From the IMG/VR virus record IMGVR_UViG_3300042473_001265, positions 248,001 to 312,000 of that record: a stretch of 64,000 bases of DNA, one strand, 5' to 3'. The notes beneath the pieces were generated by a model. That model was given only the letters and a program-made list of their open reading frames with translations. It made no database searches and was not told the DNA's origin. Below are positions 38,453 through 45,804 of the stretch, piece by piece. Within the stretch, counting starts at the first letter, position 1, and every line of letters begins with the position of its first letter. The position numbers were made by a program, and so were the translations under genes.

Positions 38453-40036
38453 TTGGCTATTGTACAAATTTCGCGAATTACCCAGCGTAAAGGGTTACAA
38501 GAAGATCTACCGCAATTGGCAGGCGCTGAATTGGGATGGAGTATCGACGAACGCAGATTGTTCATTGGTAACGGAACATTGGAAGAAGGTGCTCCAGTAA
38601 TTGGTAATACAGAAATTCTCACTGAATTTTCTGACTTATTGTATCTGGTGCAAGATTATGTATATTCGGGCCAAGAAGCCACCGGATACACAGTACAAAC
38701 AGGTGCAACACCCGGAACTCCGGTTCAACTGTCCTTGCAAAACTGGATGGATCAATTTGCCACAGTCAAAGACTTTGGTGCAGTTGGCAACGGTGTTGCT
38801 GACGACACTGCGGCCATTAACCGCGCACTTTATCAATTGTACTGTAGAGAAGTGAATCCTGCAATTCGTAGAAGTTTATTCTTTCCAGCTGGCATTTACA
38901 AAGTTTCAGGCACTATTGTTATTCCACCCTATGCCACACTGATTGGCGAAGGCCCCAAGAACAGTATTATTCAACTGACAGCAACTGCCACAGCAGTTTA
39001 CACAATGCAGACTGGCGACAGCCTACAACAGACCGGTGTCAACATTGGCACCAATGGCGCTCAACCTCCAATAAGTGTCACATGTGAAAATATGGCCTTT
39101 GCCAGTCTCAAAGCAACAGATGTTGCATGTATAGAACAGGCAACTGAATTTGTGTTTAATCAGGTTGAATTCCTTGGACCATTGACCACTGTTGATTTGA
39201 CATCGGCTGTGGCCGATATTTCGTGTGTTAAATTTATCAGTACTGCTGCCAATGACACGCATCAGATCAAGTTTGACAACTGTACATTCTCCGGCTGTAC
39301 CTATGGCATGCGAACAGATCAGCAGGTGCGTGGTATTGACTTTACTGGATCACATTTCTCCACACTGTTCGAAGGCATACTGGTTGAGCCAAACCCCCTG
39401 GGTTCTGCCTATGACCCGCGTGGTATTGGCATACAAAGTTGCGACTTTGATACTATCTATGCTCGCGGCATTGTGTTTGAAGTGGAACGCAATGCCACTG
39501 CACAAAATACATTCGGTGATGTCGGCAACCACTTTGGTGGTGTCACACAGCCCTACACTGCCATTATTGATTTTGTATCGCCCAACAACATCAGCGTTGG
39601 CGATATTTTTGATCGACCAGACCAATATGCCACACTGTATCCCAGAGTTGATTTGAATGGCACTGCCAGCATTGCGTTTACCAATGGTCAACAGTTGGCC
39701 ATGGGTCCGTATGTGCGAGAATCTGGCCTCACAGCAACATTGAACAACAATGTAACTTCGCCCACTGCTGCTTTTTCTTACAGTGAACTTGACACCTGGT
39801 CACTCAACATTGATTACAGCATTTCTAGAAGCACTGCATATAGAACTGGCAGAATTACTGTTGTTTTATTTGACGGCGCCGGTGCGCTAACATACACTGA
39901 TGATTTTTCTGAAAATACTTCTACTGGCATCACGCTGACAGTGTCACAGACCGGTAATGAAATTTTTGTAAACTACGTCAGCACAAATACCGGCACCGGT
40001 GGATCGATAACCTACAGCATAAACCATATACATTGA
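38453..40036 (+). CDS. Tailspike/tail-fibre protein (Mtd_N-like N-terminus, pectate-lyase-like beta-helix)
   Basis: 'GAELGWSIDERRLFIGNG', 'TVKDFGAVGNGVADDTAAI', 'FFPAGIYKV'. Confidence 0.8.
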   Translation: MAIVQISRITQRKGLQEDLPQLAGAELGWSIDERRLFIGNGTLEEGAPVIGNTEILTEFSDLLYLVQDYVYSGQEATGYTVQTGATPGTPVQLSLQNWMDQFATVKDFGAVGNGVADDTAAINRALYQLYCREVNPAIRRSLFFPAGIYKVSGTIVIPPYATLIGEGPKNSIIQLTATATAVYTMQTGDSLQQTGVNIGTNGAQPPISVTCENMAFASLKATDVACIEQATEFVFNQVEFLGPLTTVDLTSAVADISCVKFISTAANDTHQIKFDNCTFSGCTYGMRTDQQVRGIDFTGSHFSTLFEGILVEPNPLGSAYDPRGIGIQSCDFDTIYARGIVFEVERNATAQNTFGDVGNHFGGVTQPYTAIIDFVSPNNISVGDIFDRPDQYATLYPRVDLNGTASIAFTNGQQLAMGPYVRESGLTATLNNNVTSPTAAFSYSELDTWSLNIDYSISRSTAYRTGRITVVLFDGAGALTYTDDFSENTSTGITLTVSQTGNEIFVNYVSTNTGTGGSITYSINHIH

Positions 40037-40478: not shown

Positions 40479-42797
40479 ATGTCAACAATCAATGTAGTAA
40501 AACGAAGCGGTCGGCGCGAGATCATGGCCATCGAAAAATGGCAAACCCAAGTAGCAAAAGTGTGCCAAGGCATAGCAGATGTCAGCCAAAGTATGGTGGA
40601 GATCAAAGCACAATTGCATTTCTACGATGGTATCACCACCAAAGAAATTGACGGTATCACACTTAGAGCTATTGTGGATTTGATCGATGTTGAATCAAAT
40701 CCTGATGTGGGCCATACCAACTATCAATATGTGGCCGGCAAACAAAGACTTAGCATGTTGAGAAAAGATGTGTACGGCAGCTATGATGTGCCATCACTGT
40801 ACACGATTGTAAAAAAGAATGTGGCCACTGGCCTGTACACTCCTGAGCTGCTGGAATGGTACACTGAAGATGATTGGAACCGAATGGATTCTTTCATTGA
40901 CCACAGCAAAGATGAACTGTATGGTTATGCAGCCATTGAACAGCTGATTGAAAAATATCTAGTTAAAAATCGTTCAACAGGACAAATTTATGAAACTCCA
41001 CAAATTAGATACATGGTCGCGGCCGCTACTGTATTTCACTCAGAAGAACCGAACACAGCGAGAATGCGCTTCATCAAAGAATACTACAACGCTGCCAGTG
41101 ATGGGCTATTTACTCTTGCTACTCCTGTTCTTGCTGGGCTTGGTACTCCTACGAAACAATTTTCATCTTGCGTTCTTATTAGATCAGATGATGATTTGGA
41201 TAGTATTTTCGCGTCTGGTGAAATGATGGCCAAGTATGCCAGCAAGCGAGCTGGCATTGGATTAGAGATTGGTAGATTGCGTCCACTAGGTTCGCCCATT
41301 CGTGGTGGTGAGATCATGCACACAGGTATGATACCATTCTTGAAGAAATGGTTTGGAGATTTGCGTAGTTGTAGTCAAGGAGGTATTCGTAATGCTAGTG
41401 CTACTGTGTTTTACCCTATTTGGCATCATCAATTTGATGATCTTATTGTACTCAAGAACAATCAAGGGACTGAAGAGACCCGAGTTCGACACATGGATTA
41501 TGGAGTCGTATTGTCAGCATTCTTCTGGAGACGATTTAAAAACAAAGAAGACATAACATTCTTTGATCCTAACGAAGTGCCCGACTTGTATCAAGCGTTC
41601 TATAGTAATACAGAACTATTCGAAGAACTTTATGTAAAGTATGAAAAGCAATCTGGCCTGCGTAAGAAAACTATGAGTGCTGAAGAAGTATTTAAATCAG
41701 GCATCTTGAAGGAGCGCACAGACACTGGACGCATCTATCTAGTGTTCATTGACAATGTGATGAAGCAAGGACCGTTTGATCCTGAATACCACACCATTTA
41801 CCAAAGTAACCTTTGTTGTGAAATACTTTTACCTACTCGTTCTTTTAAGCGTCTCGATGATGCTGATGGGCGCATCGCTTTATGCACTCTTGGTTCAATT
41901 AATTGGGGTGCCTTCCGTAATCCTGAAGATATGCGCAGGGCTTGTCGCATTCTACATAGAAGCCTCAATAATATACTGGACTATCAAGATTTCCTATCAA
42001 TTCAGTCGAAGTTGAGCAACGATGAAATCAGACCACTGGGAATTGGTATCACCAATCTTGCCTACTGGCATGCCAAGCGTAGTTTGAAATATGGTGAGAA
42101 GGATGCTCTGGCAGAAGTCAAAACTTGGATGGAACATCAGACATATTATCTAACTGAGATGAGTGTTGAACTGGCTGAGGAGCGAGGCCGATGTGAAGGC
42201 AGTGATCACACACGCTATGGCCAAGGACAGTTTCCCTGGGAACTTCGTGCAGTAGGAGTCAATGAACTGACTGATTTTACCCCGGAACTTGAATGGGAAA
42301 CACTTCGTGCTAGAATGAAAGTGAGTGGCGTTCGTAATGCTACTAATGGAGCAATTGCTCCTGTTGAATCCAGTTCGGTGGCCATCAACTCAACCAACGG
42401 CATTGAAATGCCCATGAGCCTGATCACTGTGAAAGAAAGCAAGGCCGGCAGTTTGATTCAAGTGGCGCCCGAATACAACCGGTTGAAAAACAAATATCAA
42501 CTGATGTGGGCACAAAAAGATTGTGATGGCTACTTGAAAACAGCCGCAGTACTAGCTGCCTATGTGGACCAAAGCATCAGTACCAACACATTCTACAATC
42601 CTGCACACTTTGCAGATCGTAAGGTACCAACAACTCTAATTGCTCGGAACTTGATGCAGTCGCACTACTGGGGTCTAAAAACTTTCTACTACAGCCTGAT
42701 CAACAAAGCAGGTAGCAAAGGTCAAGACGAAGTTGTTGCACCATTGGAAGCGATTGAGTTTGATGATCAAGAAGATTGCGAGGCATGCAAGCTCTAG
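40479..42797 (+). CDS. nrdA: Ribonucleotide reductase class Ia alpha subunit with ATP-cone
   Basis: 'VVKRSG', 'FSSCVL', 'NLCCEI', 'IAPVESS', 'KTFYY', C-terminal 'CEAC'. Confidence 0.97.
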   Translation: MSTINVVKRSGRREIMAIEKWQTQVAKVCQGIADVSQSMVEIKAQLHFYDGITTKEIDGITLRAIVDLIDVESNPDVGHTNYQYVAGKQRLSMLRKDVYGSYDVPSLYTIVKKNVATGLYTPELLEWYTEDDWNRMDSFIDHSKDELYGYAAIEQLIEKYLVKNRSTGQIYETPQIRYMVAAATVFHSEEPNTARMRFIKEYYNAASDGLFTLATPVLAGLGTPTKQFSSCVLIRSDDDLDSIFASGEMMAKYASKRAGIGLEIGRLRPLGSPIRGGEIMHTGMIPFLKKWFGDLRSCSQGGIRNASATVFYPIWHHQFDDLIVLKNNQGTEETRVRHMDYGVVLSAFFWRRFKNKEDITFFDPNEVPDLYQAFYSNTELFEELYVKYEKQSGLRKKTMSAEEVFKSGILKERTDTGRIYLVFIDNVMKQGPFDPEYHTIYQSNLCCEILLPTRSFKRLDDADGRIALCTLGSINWGAFRNPEDMRRACRILHRSLNNILDYQDFLSIQSKLSNDEIRPLGIGITNLAYWHAKRSLKYGEKDALAEVKTWMEHQTYYLTEMSVELAEERGRCEGSDHTRYGQGQFPWELRAVGVNELTDFTPELEWETLRARMKVSGVRNATNGAIAPVESSSVAINSTNGIEMPMSLITVKESKAGSLIQVAPEYNRLKNKYQLMWAQKDCDGYLKTAAVLAAYVDQSISTNTFYNPAHFADRKVPTTLIARNLMQSHYWGLKTFYYSLINKAGSKGQDEVVAPLEAIEFDDQEDCEACKL

Positions 42798-42808
42798 CAT
42801 GAAATGGT

Positions 42809-43306
42809 ATGAAAATAAATGAACTGTTAGAAAGTGCAGATGACATAGAGTTCAAGGCAAAAACTCTTGCTGTTGATGCACACAAGAACCAAAAATACGG
42901 TGTACACCCTTATGTCACTCATTTGGCGGATGTTGTTGCCCGTGTTAAAACAATTACACAAGACCCGGAAATAATTGCTGCTGCTTGGTTGCATGATATA
43001 GTGGAAGATACAGATGTTACCTTAGAACAAATCAAACAACAATTTGGTGATAATGTTGCCAATATAGTTTGGGCAGTGACAGGACGCGGAGAGAACCGAA
43101 AAGAAAAAATGGCAAATGCCATTGCCAAGATTGCTCAAACTCCGGGAAGTGAATTGGTAAAGAGTGCAGACCGATTGAGCAATGTTTCTGCCAGTTTAGC
43201 AAACAATCCAAAAAAACTTAAAATGTACCGAGATGAACACAAGGATTTGAGTCCAGTCTTGGGCAATAATGCATTGGCTTTAGAGCTAGTGGATTTATTT
43301 AAATAA
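42809..43306 (+). CDS. HD-domain hydrolase, Mesh1/SpoT-type small alarmone hydrolase-like
   Basis: 'AHKNQKY...PYVTHL..V', 'AAWLHDIVEDT', 'FGDNVA.IV..VT', 'VKSADRLSN'. Confidence 0.85.
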   Translation: MKINELLESADDIEFKAKTLAVDAHKNQKYGVHPYVTHLADVVARVKTITQDPEIIAAAWLHDIVEDTDVTLEQIKQQFGDNVANIVWAVTGRGENRKEKMANAIAKIAQTPGSELVKSADRLSNVSASLANNPKKLKMYRDEHKDLSPVLGNNALALELVDLFK

Positions 43307-43321
43307 AGAAAATAAATCGTA

Positions 43322-43420
43322 ATGTTAGAAACCATTTGTGATGTGATGTTGGATGCGTACGAGCGCAATTGGTCAGCCGGTGATGATTGGTTTTACTCCA
43401 TTGATGCAAAAAAAGAATAA
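43322..43420 (+). pseudogene. 32-codon ORF, possibly a deletion remnant
   Basis: MLETICDVMLDAYERNWSAGDDWFYSIDAKKE; as recalled, the N-terminus resembles phage class II aldolase-family proteins (unverified). Confidence 0.35.
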
Positions 43421-43435
43421 CAGGAAAATATTAAA

Positions 43436-44536
43436 ATGAGCCAAGCGCAATACAACTTAAAAACAAAAACAGATTATCTCAATCGTAAGATGTTTCTGGA
43501 TCCTGCGGGTCCTGTGACCATTCAACGCTTTGAAGAAGTCAAATACAACAAGATTGTAAAATTTGAACAAGAGGCTCGCGGATTCTTCTGGGTGCCCGAG
43601 GAAGTCAGCCTGACCAAGGATGCCAACGACTTCAAGGAAGCCAGCAGCACAGTCAAACATATTTTTACATCAAACCTGCTGCGTCAAACAGCACTGGACA
43701 GTTTACAAGGTCGTGGACCCACACAGGTGTTTACTCCTGTGGTATCAATTCCTGAATTAGAAGCCTTAATGTACAACTGGGGATTCTTTGAAACCAACAT
43801 TCACAGTAGAAGTTACAGTCACATCATCCGTAACATCTACAATGTGCCCAAGGATGTGTTCAGCACAATCCATGACACAAAAGAAATTGTTGAAATGGCC
43901 AGTACAATTGGCCTGTATTATGATCGCCTGCACATGATCAACTGCCGCAAAGAACTACAAGAAGATTTTGACGAATATGAACACATCAAAGCCATCTGGT
44001 TAGCACTGAATGCCAGCTACGGACTAGAAGCGTTCAGATTCATGGTCAGCTTTGCCACCAGCTTGGCCATGGTTGAGAACAGAATCTTCATTGGCAATGG
44101 CAATATCATCAGCTTGATACTGCAAGACGAAATTCTACACAAGGACTGGACAGCCTGGATCATCAATCAGGTGGTCAAAGAAGATCCACGCTTTGCCCGA
44201 GCCAAGCAAGAATGCGAAGCCGAAGTGTATCAAATGTATCTAGATGTGATTCGTGAAGAAAAAGCCTGGGCCGACTATTTGTTCAATCAAGGTCCAGTGA
44301 TTGGACTCAATGCCAACATTCTCAAAGACTTTGTGGACTACACAGCCGTGGGCGCACTGAAAGAAATTGGTATCAAGTATCAAGAACCTGCACCTCGTTC
44401 AACCCCCATTCCGTGGTTCAACAAGCATACAAACACAGCCAACAAGCAGACAGCTTTGCAAGAAAATGAAAGCACAAATTATGTCATTGGCGTGATGTCG
44501 TCTGACCTGGACTACGAACAACTACCGGAGCTATAA
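43436..44536 (+). CDS. nrdB: Ribonucleotide reductase class Ia beta subunit
   Basis: 'FFWVPEEV', 'LDSLQGR', 'ETNIHSRSY', 'LEAFRF', 'DEILH'. Confidence 0.97.
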   Translation: MSQAQYNLKTKTDYLNRKMFLDPAGPVTIQRFEEVKYNKIVKFEQEARGFFWVPEEVSLTKDANDFKEASSTVKHIFTSNLLRQTALDSLQGRGPTQVFTPVVSIPELEALMYNWGFFETNIHSRSYSHIIRNIYNVPKDVFSTIHDTKEIVEMASTIGLYYDRLHMINCRKELQEDFDEYEHIKAIWLALNASYGLEAFRFMVSFATSLAMVENRIFIGNGNIISLILQDEILHKDWTAWIINQVVKEDPRFARAKQECEAEVYQMYLDVIREEKAWADYLFNQGPVIGLNANILKDFVDYTAVGALKEIGIKYQEPAPRSTPIPWFNKHTNTANKQTALQENESTNYVIGVMSSDLDYEQLPEL

Positions 44537-44538
44537 AA

Positions 44539-44991
44539 ATGAATGACGATATTCGACAATCTATTGCAGCAACCGCACCCGGAGTAGATGATGCCTGGTT
44601 TGATGCTGGCGGTTTCCAGACCTACAAACACCCAACACCTATCAGTTATGAAACTGCCACAGACAACGGCACAGTAGATACACTAGAAGGACCTGTGGAC
44701 TACACCGTGGGTCACAAGATCATCACTGGTCCCAAAGGTGAGAAGTATCCTGTGAGCCCCATCAAGTTTGCTGCATACTACGACGACAATGGTGATGGCA
44801 CAGCAACACCCAAGAAAATCATGAAGGTGGCAAAGATTGCCGACCATGACGGTGTTGTCCGAGCCAGCTGGGGAGATTTAAATTATACCAAGGGCAATGA
44901 CTACATTGTGAAACATGGTCCTGGTGACTACGGTGTTGTGAAAGCAGACATCTTTGCCAAAACATACAACAAATCAAAAGAAGGAAAATAA
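44539..44991 (+). CDS. PGDYG-motif protein
   Basis: 'GDYIVKHGPGDYGVVKADIFAKTY'; two similar half-domains. Confidence 0.7.
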   Translation: MNDDIRQSIAATAPGVDDAWFDAGGFQTYKHPTPISYETATDNGTVDTLEGPVDYTVGHKIITGPKGEKYPVSPIKFAAYYDDNGDGTATPKKIMKVAKIADHDGVVRASWGDLNYTKGNDYIVKHGPGDYGVVKADIFAKTYNKSKEGK

Positions 44992-45522: not shown

Positions 45523-45804
45523 ATGCCAGCAGTACAGCGAGTAGGCGATTCAAATTCAGCAGGCGGTCAAGCCACCGGTGGCGTGGCTTCTGTACGAGTG
45601 AATGGCAGTCCTATTGTTGTCGCGGGCAACGGTGTCACTGGGCATGCTCCGTGGGGAAAACCGCATCCTCCACATGCTTCTGCCACAGTCAAAGGTGGCA
45701 GCGCCACAGTGCGAGCCGGCGGCAAGCCAGTGATCCGAACTGGAGATACCGACACCTGCGGTCATCCACGATCAGGTGGTAGCTCCAATGTAAGGGCTGC
45801 ATAA
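45523..45804 (+). CDS. PAAR-repeat tail-spike tip protein
   Basis: 'PAVQRVGD', 'VRVNGSPI', 'GKPVIRTGDTDTCGH', His-rich Zn site. Confidence 0.9.
   Translation: MPAVQRVGDSNSAGGQATGGVASVRVNGSPIVVAGNGVTGHAPWGKPHPPHASATVKGGSATVRAGGKPVIRTGDTDTCGHPRSGGSSNVRAA

Follow-up and report, generated by a model that had tools for sequence, protein, structure and literature searches.

Between nrdA and nrdB, the genes for the large and small subunits of ribonucleotide reductase, a jumbo phage from lake water carries a short gene for a predicted stand-alone RelA/SpoT-type HD hydrolase, a small alarmone hydrolase (SAH). The gene lies in a stretch of 64,000 nucleotides, here called the window, which covers positions 248001-312000 of the IMG/VR virus record IMGVR_UViG_3300042473_001265 (340,172 bp, judged 98% complete). 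Because its genes include one for a major capsid protein of the T4 gp23 type (E 8e-99), we regard the phage as a T4-like jumbo phage; lake-water metagenomes are the source of all 24 public runs listed with the stretch. Sequence comparison with related phages points to the SAH gene as optional cargo, brought in far more recently than its carrier genomes diverged. The locus is made up as follows, in positions of the window:

40479 to 42797, + strand: nrdA, large subunit of class Ia ribonucleotide reductase (Pfam Ribonuc_red_lgC at E 9e-108, with lgN and ATP-cone)
42809 to 43306, + strand: the SAH gene, with an ATG start, a TAA stop and 165 codons for 165 amino acids, bounded by stops
43322 to 43420, + strand: an aldolase-like stub of 32 amino acids, of which the first 17 residues (~66 nt) match the intact gene, the rest being deleted
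43436 to 44536, + strand: nrdB, ribonucleotide reductase small subunit of 366 amino acids (Pfam Ribonuc_red_sm at E 7e-40)

The genes nrdA, SAH and nrdB are co-directional, with the nrdA stop 11 nt 5' of the SAH open reading frame (ORF) and the nrdB start 129 nt 3' of it, and genes for a PGDYG-family protein and a glutaredoxin then follow. The nrdA gene is intact, with a product of 772 amino acids and neither intein nor intron, and no alternative genetic code was needed to read the genes. An identical arrangement is found in seven independent IMG/VR contigs, and contigs from three independent lake metagenomes (runs X4, X5 and X6) cover the end of nrdA, the SAH gene and the start of nrdB with 0 mismatches, which together exclude an assembly artefact. 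An earlier note on this DNA had reported an ORF with an HDxxED motif between nrdA and nrdB; its coordinates and motif are borne out, and Pfam identifies the flanking genes as nrdA and nrdB. A near-identity DNA search returned no match to the nrdA-SAH-nrdB region among deposited phages, where the nearest NrdA, from Xanthomonas phages, is 60% identical; by sequence, the phage appears to have no cultured close relative.

The assignment to the alarmone hydrolases draws on profile, sequence and structure comparisons. The protein matches Pfam HD_4 (PF13328) at 55 bits (E 1e-14; gathering cut-off 27.2) and PHROG 990, annotated as a metal-dependent phosphohydrolase (E 2.5e-38), and its match to the NCBIfam spoT_relA model (TIGR00691) is confined to the N-terminal hydrolase region. 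The generic HD family PF01966 also matches, at 25.5 bits (E 1.8e-5) against the 55 bits of HD_4. Matches to PDB sequences, up to E 1e-4, are without exception hydrolase domains of RelA/SpoT homologues (RSH) or SAHs: Rel of B. subtilis and S. aureus, RelSeq, SpoT, Drosophila and human Mesh1, the P. aeruginosa SAH, C. glutamicum RelH and B. caccae Aph1. A model made with AlphaFold2 from an alignment of 67 relatives (mean pLDDT 93.5, ten helices) finds its best PDB matches by Foldseek in 3nqw (Drosophila Mesh1, TM 0.82) and in 9chy, 3nr1 and 5vxa (human MESH1, 0.82-0.85), followed by the P. aeruginosa SAH (6yvc and 6z3n, TM 0.81-0.82); the matches listed, down to E 3e-2, are all RSH hydrolases. 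A search of the whole 340,172-bp record for the RelA_SpoT synthetase domain (PF04607) was negative. With HD_4, RSH-only neighbours and no PF04607 in the genome, the earlier description of a stand-alone SpoT/Mesh1-type HD domain without a synthetase stands, and the clustering with unrelated HD families that had been named as its refuting outcome was not seen in sequence or structure.

Relatives occur in 429 deposited phage records, the best of them in Nodularia cyanophages (46.5% identity), and metagenomes hold at least 217 related proteins at 60-96% identity, several on contigs of 345-360 kb. Bacterial reference genomes scanned with strict family patterns gave no relative, a result that says little on bacterial origin.

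The residues expected of an active enzyme occupy three positions in the gene:

42920 to 42922, + strand: H38, the first metal-binding histidine (RelSeq H53) by alignment to RelSeq, family-invariant
42992 to 43009, + strand: the HDxxED motif, L-H62-D63-I-V-E66-D67-T, with H62-D63 as metal ligands and E66-D67 as catalytic dyad
43169 to 43183, + strand: D121-R122-L123-S124-N125, the ADRLxN motif, with D121 a metal ligand (RelSeq D144) and N125 equivalent to RelSeq N148

In a gapless HMMER alignment H62, D63, E66 and D67 correspond to H77, D78, E81 and D82 of RelSeq, so that the metal ligands H...HD...D, the ED dyad and the ADRLxN motif are all present. Since the metal site and the dyad are complete, the SAH has kept the residues for catalysis; the metal in characterised SAH enzymes is Mn2+. 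H38, H62, D63, E66, D67, D121, R122 and N125 are invariant across 67 relatives (61-99% identity), and the dN/dS of the gene against its relatives is 0.04-0.08. The SAH gene is thus under strong purifying selection.

The history of the gene differs from that of its surroundings. Against loci L022 and L023, which carry an SAH gene in the same place, the SAH gene has a nucleotide identity of 97%, a third-position identity of 0.92 at identical residues and a dS of 0.12-0.15. The corresponding values are 79-81%, 0.60-0.62 and ~1.4 for nrdA, and 75-79%, 0.60-0.68 and 0.9-2.3 for nrdB, which makes the SAH gene roughly ten-fold younger than its flanks at synonymous sites. Identity to L022 in a sliding window rises from ~0.75 to 0.95 or more at ~42775 and stays high up to the SAH stop (43306), and at its 5' end the aldolase stub is almost the same as the L023 sequence. 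These boundaries delimit one exchanged block:

42779 to 43387, + strand: exchanged block, comprising the nrdA tail, an 11-nt spacer, the SAH gene, a 15-nt spacer and the 5' end of the aldolase remnant

Compared base by base, the crossover falls within the last ~20 nt of nrdA, and the last ~19 nt of the gene in the window (42779..42797, ...GAGGCATGCAAGCTCTAG) are part of the exchanged block. The nrdA tail ...GCAAGCTCTAG is common to the window, L022, L023 and L009, whereas L035 and the majority of empty sites have the tail ...AAATTATAA. Of the relatives, L035 has the closest backbone (NrdA 97% and NrdB 96% amino acid identity, ~93% nucleotide identity, nrdB dS 0.39), and its slot holds the aldolase gene only, without the SAH. 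The contrast in dS and identity between the SAH gene and its flanks, the sharp boundaries and the lack of an SAH gene in L035 show a recent lateral exchange of the cassette between diverged genomes; it has moved far more recently than its carriers diverged. The word "inserted" in the earlier note therefore proves apt, given the empty junctions in relatives, L035 and the relative youth of the gene at synonymous sites.

Contigs from independent lake runs show several forms of the locus. The SAH-bearing form is present there with 0 mismatches; run X19 contains a stub-less form of the L022 type, with position 43312 joined to 43436 and CATT between, and X5 and X6 contain contigs joining 42718 to 43436. 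The same lake samples thus contain both SAH-plus and SAH-less forms. The contig depth summed for the SAH gene is 3-20 times below that for nrdA and nrdB, and, contig depth being a poor measure, we take this as consistent with carriage of the SAH by a minority of co-occurring related phages.

A survey of the nrdA-nrdB slot covered 80 loci with close NrdB relatives (86-100% identity) together with the SAH-bearing L009, L022 and L023. The end of nrdA and the start of nrdB are both spanned in 62 of the surveyed loci, in which the gap between the genes ranges from 8 to 4139 nt. Six loci (L038, L039, L042, L050, L074 and L081) have an empty junction, where the nrdA stop is followed by 8-17 nt with a ribosome-binding site and then the nrdB ATG. 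A class II aldolase-like gene (PF00596) occupies the slot in 21 loci, in L035 and L107 as sole occupant. Other cargo includes an isocitrate lyase, class IV and class V aminotransferases, a fatty-acid desaturase, a radical-SAM/SPASM protein, a YHYH protein, a Tim44-like protein and a ferredoxin-PHROG protein (L090:574-1818; L069:3676-4596; L044:3718-4935; L096:1747-2475; L091:3859-5001; L091:874-1989; L069:2261-3100; L067:2293-2952). In the slot, the SAH is confined to the group of the window: it stands alone in L022, beside an intact aldolase gene in L023-L025, directly downstream of an endonuclease gene in L009 and beside the 32-residue aldolase stub in the window. Among the 55 loci from the NrdB search with both gene ends, none has an SAH gene in the slot, window-identical contigs aside. 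The nrdA-nrdB slot is hypervariable, and the SAH is optional cargo in it, not core equipment.

The intact form of the aldolase-like gene encodes 207 amino acids (L023:6526-7149; PF00596 at E 5.7e-29) and lies at the same position in L035 and many relatives. In L034, whose NrdB is 100% identical to that of the window, the available 64 nt upstream match the 3' end of the intact aldolase gene, and because of this match a variant with the window's nrdB and a full aldolase gene may exist.

T4 suggests how the cassette may have moved. Its endonuclease gene mobE sits in the gap between nrdA and nrdB, within a region documented as a hotspot for endonucleases, and through co-conversion mobE carries nearby non-mobile DNA along (PMC2790892). 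The slots of L009 and L079 contain PHROG-655 homing endonucleases (E 1e-56) with NUMOD3 motifs, and no endonuclease gene is found between nrdA and nrdB in the window's own slot. Because the endonuclease in L009 lies directly upstream of the SAH gene, co-conversion is plausible here, and by analogy with T4 it may have helped to move the cassette; ordinary homologous recombination between conserved nrd flanks would leave an identical pattern. The earlier note had pointed to this slot as one where T4-like phages often carry homing endonucleases. This is right for T4 (mobE) and for L009 and L079, but most occupants in the clade are metabolic cargo. The L009 locus (L009:1399-5304; SAH 91% identical) shows a further peculiarity, in that its nrdA is split into ORFs of 315 and 610 amino acids by a 364-residue ORF without a Pfam match. 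That ORF could represent an intein, an intron-encoded protein or a free-standing endonuclease, and the arrangement is reminiscent of Aeromonas phage Aeh1, in which an endonuclease splits nrdA (PMC3045599).

More distant carriers place the gene differently. In relatives whose SAH is 62-77% identical, the gene is located elsewhere in the genome, and in two of them (SAH 67-77% identical; L003:6001-9886 and the 126-kb contig of P0013) it lies directly upstream of genes for a bifunctional NMNAT/NUDIX protein and NAMPT. In L003, rIIB lies close to the SAH and the NAD+ salvage pair. Such a neighbourhood of SAH, NMNAT/NUDIX and NAMPT could be a counter-defence island; no NAMPT gene is found in the window's own genome. 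A search for an SAH elsewhere in five partial contigs of relatives (20-62% complete) was positive in one, which is uninformative, as these are fragments.

We propose that the SAH is a catalytically competent, metal-dependent enzyme that removes the 3'-pyrophosphate of (p)ppGpp or (p)ppApp, keeps alarmones low during infection, and is optional, recently moved cargo. Sequence and model make this, in our judgement, a likely account, within which we infer the substrate, the timing of expression, the benefit to the phage and the mechanism of mobility. The tightly packed, co-directional gene string continues beyond nrdB with two genes:

44539 to 44991, + strand: PGDYG-family protein (PF14083 at E 2e-9), directly 3' of nrdB and 91% conserved in L023
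44992 to 45219, + strand: glutaredoxin (PF00462 at E 1e-15; PHROG 22), the likely reductant for NrdAB

The SAH would probably be co-expressed with nrdA, nrdB and the glutaredoxin gene. It would cleave (p)ppGpp and/or (p)ppApp to GDP/GTP or ADP/ATP, and the resulting low alarmone levels would hold a nutrient-limited lake host out of the stringent, growth-arrested state. Alarmone-based toxins and alarmone-dependent abortive-infection responses would be blunted in the same way, and nucleotide and macromolecule synthesis would thereby continue for the phage. GDP and ADP are substrates of class Ia ribonucleotide reductase. MazG, a second alarmone-degrading enzyme, has no match in the phage genome.

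Several observations weigh against this proposal, among them the base site:

42893 to 42901, + strand: K29-Y30-G31, at the nucleobase-contacting positions of Rel enzymes by gapless HMMER alignment to RelSeq and B. subtilis Rel

The base-contacting residues are R43-R44-S45 in T. thermophilus Rel and R44-K45-S46 in RelSeq (PMC10083569). The SAH thus lacks the guanine-contacting R-(R/K)-S triad of the canonical (p)ppGpp hydrolases Rel and SpoT and has K29-Y30-G31 instead. The signature of the (p)ppApp-type enzyme Aph1 comprises D24, D116 and R119 plus R96, K133 and Y134, with two helices lost (PMC10083569); in the SAH, K29, S127 and L130 stand in place of D24, D116 and R119 in a sequence register, not a structural superposition, so this signature is absent as well. 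Because both the triad and the Aph1 signature are missing, base preference is not readable from the sequence. At the level of the locus, promoter and terminator scans gave nothing above shuffled expectation, and none among the public RNA runs holds the locus. The adjacency to nrdA and nrdB is weak evidence for a link to ribonucleotide reduction, because the slot holds many unrelated genes. Any benefit would depend on whether the host makes toxSAS toxins or mounts a restrictive stringent response.

The base site can nonetheless be read in terms of known enzymes. K29 is conservative for the first arginine, and ppGpp activity may be compatible with K-Y-G; Y30 and G31 are invariant among the 67 relatives, and the equivalent of T153 of T. 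thermophilus Rel is A128 or S129, depending on a one-residue gap. The SAH shares 32% identity over 146 amino acids (E 8e-17) with PaSpo of phage SSU5, which has K-Y-T at the base-contacting positions, and 35% over only 89 amino acids with PbcSpo of phage PVP-SE1, which has D-K-G. From these comparisons the SAH is probably a PaSpo-like enzyme, promiscuous towards both bases; enzymes of the P. aeruginosa SAH (PaSAH) type act on both. Sequence scores run from 58 bits for Rel through 48 for Drosophila Mesh1, 44 for human MESH1 and 40 for PaSAH to 27.6 for Aph1, and by structure Mesh1 ranks first, by a small margin over PaSAH. The label "Mesh1-like" in the earlier note is accordingly sound for the fold (TM 0.82-0.85 to Mesh1); a place in the Mesh1 subfamily is no more than possible, and the long Rel enzymes score higher in sequence.

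An alternative to general alarmone removal is a dedicated counter-defence against toxSAS toxins (CapRel, FaRel, PhRel), in which the SAH would degrade toxin-made (pp)pApp or strip the 3'-pyrophosphate from tRNA CCA ends and leave the housekeeping stringent response aside. We regard this as possible, though unlikely as the main role. Supporting it, PaSpo and PbcSpo, the stand-alone SAHs of phages SSU5 and PVP-SE1, neutralise all five toxSAS toxins tested (Jimmy et al. 2020, PMC7229694); SAHs can remove the pyrophosphate that toxSAS enzymes add at tRNA CCA ends, MESH1 and ATfaRel having restored FaRel2-modified tRNA (Kurata et al., bioRxiv 10.1101/2021.04.30.441581); and CapRel is a defence set off by phages (PMC9712102). 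Sporadic occurrence and lateral exchange, as seen for the SAH, are typical of anti-defence cargo, and in relatives the gene adjoins NMNAT/NUDIX and NAMPT, NAD+-salvage genes that are themselves counter-defence candidates. However, the phage has neither a toxSAS nor a synthetase, and no sequence feature separates an anti-toxSAS role from the general removal of alarmones; one enzyme could fill both roles.

A bolder version, which we hold to be more doubtful still, would make the lake-phage SAH clade with its K-Y-G site a distinct subfamily whose preferred substrate is not ppGpp but (pp)pApp, 3'-pyrophosphorylated tRNA or NADPH. Such an enzyme would act as a mobile module for counter-defence, which co-occurring jumbo phages exchange at the nrdA-nrdB hotspot by endonuclease-driven co-conversion. 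This idea arises from the K-Y-G base site and from the position of the SAH gene directly upstream of NMNAT/NUDIX and NAMPT in relatives.

That the true substrate is not an alarmone at all seems improbable to us. The enzyme might then remove the 2'-phosphate of NADPH or act on another phosphorylated adenosine nucleotide, tuning NAD(P)H together with phage NAD+ salvage. Human MESH1 has been reported as an NADPH phosphatase, XccSAH, an orphan SAH from a bacterium, hydrolyses NADPH and changes the level of NADH (PMC9765508), the top structural matches include the complexes of MESH1 with NADPH (5vxa) and PAPS (9chy), K-Y-G departs from the guanine-binding R-R-S, and two relatives with an SAH at 67-77% identity have the gene directly upstream of NMNAT/NUDIX and NAMPT. 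Yet the characterised NADPH-active SAHs all hydrolyse alarmones too, and NAMPT is absent from the window's genome, so that the association is not kept; gene adjacency in phages is in any case weak evidence.

Two remaining explanations have very little in their favour. A different HD phosphohydrolase that works for the nucleotide cluster, for instance as a dNTP triphosphohydrolase or 5'-nucleotidase, and merely resembles an RSH hydrolase domain would suit the PF01966 match and the nucleotide-metabolism genes around it, but is highly improbable in view of the stronger HD_4 score, the RSH-only neighbours in sequence and structure, the invariant RSH-specific ED dyad and ADRLxN motif, and slot cargo that in most relatives is unrelated to nucleotide metabolism. 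A neutral or selfish passenger, of no use to the phage and spread at the nrd hotspot through co-conversion by homing endonucleases, would agree with the mobilisation in trans of non-mobile DNA at the T4 hotspot (PMC2790892), with the endonuclease that abuts the SAH in L009 and with the decay of the window's neighbouring aldolase gene to a stub; it, too, deserves scant credence, given the dN/dS of 0.04-0.08, catalytic residues that are invariant in over 200 relatives, the persistence of the family at other positions in related jumbo phages and a window slot without an endonuclease.

Genes for putative structural proteins lie on either side of the nrd cluster. Just upstream, at 38453 to 40036 on the + strand, a protein of 527 amino acids resembles a tail fibre or tail spike with a pectate-lyase-like beta-helix (PF12708 at E 1.7e-15). 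Because it is only 42% identical in the L023 backbone, it is likely to be a host-range determinant. Downstream, at 45523 to 45804 on the + strand, a PAAR-motif protein of 93 amino acids (PF05488 at E 4e-9) lies in a GC-rich stretch (0.52-0.53 vs ~0.44) and is followed by a 649-residue protein without a Pfam match; both are probably components of the tail tip or baseplate spike.

The enzyme is not new as a kind of protein, stand-alone phage SAHs having been described before. What is new is the population genetics: an optional, recently traded item of cargo in a hypervariable nrdA-nrdB slot of abundant lake jumbo phages. Alarmone signalling is increasingly regarded as a battleground between phages and bacteria, through restriction by the stringent response, toxSAS/CapRel and TIR-driven toxin activation, and direct tests of phage hydrolases are few. 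Near-isogenic lake phages with or without the hydrolase at one site, and the same cassette in diverged backbones, amount to a natural experiment. With them, one can test in environmental populations what alarmone removal is worth to phage fitness, for instance by relating SAH-plus and SAH-less forms to nutrients and host defences. More broadly, the endonuclease hotspot that T4 has between nrdA and nrdB is, in freshwater jumbo phages, a landing site open to auxiliary metabolic genes in general.

Each of the activities suggested in the earlier note, on ppGpp, on ppApp, on NADPH and in rescue from toxSAS, is on record for other SAHs and would be a candidate for this one. Phage interference with alarmones has several precedents. 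"HD-alarmone PDEases" are listed among the counter-nucleotide enzymes of jumbo phages (Iyer et al. 2021, PMC7824862), and a Pakpunavirus SAH has been annotated and discussed (PMC12846349). Phage portal proteins block RelA and SpoT (2026 paper, PMC13483052). Atd1, a phage MazG-like enzyme, depletes ppGpp and protects against TIR-driven abortive infection (bioRxiv 10.1101/2022.06.09.495361). Atd1 is a functional analogue of the role proposed here, (p)ppGpp depletion that protects infection, but has the unrelated fold of an all-alpha MazG NTP pyrophosphohydrolase.

Among the characterised enzymes, PaSpo of SSU5 resembles the window's SAH in its single HD_4 domain, its phage origin, the lack of a cognate synthetase, the HDxxED motif and the K-Y base site. 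It differs in its length (~213 amino acids, with a C-terminal extension), in having ADLLDN where the SAH has ADRLSN, and in belonging to a plasmid-like enterobacterial phage; its activity on toxSAS is experimental, whereas the window's SAH is known here from sequence and model. The P. aeruginosa SAH (6yvc, 6z3n), which hydrolyses (p)ppGpp and (p)ppApp, has the same fold (TM 0.81-0.82), a similar size and 28-29% identity, but is chromosomal, takes part in biofilm formation, protects against the toxin Tas1 and scores 40 bits. Metazoan Mesh1 (3nqw, 3nr1, 5vxa, 9chy) is likewise a stand-alone HD domain (~180 amino acids) with identical metal and catalytic residues, and is set apart by 25-29% identity, an R-K-D base site and a longer loop before the first metal histidine. 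The (p)ppApp-specific Aph1 of B. caccae (PDB 7smg; PMC10083569) is a phage-associated SAH with the same core fold (TM 0.69 by query, 0.80 by target), yet lacks two helices of the window's SAH and is its weakest SAH sequence match (27.6 bits).

For the locus as a whole, the closest parallel is T4 mobE and the hyperplastic nrdA-nrdB region of the T-even phages. The SAH gene occupies the same intergenic position in a T4-like phage, and the nrdA tail travels with its cassette, which is compatible with co-conversion of the flanks. Unlike mobE, the occupant here would be a metabolic or counter-defence enzyme, in a clade whose slot mostly carries auxiliary metabolic genes.

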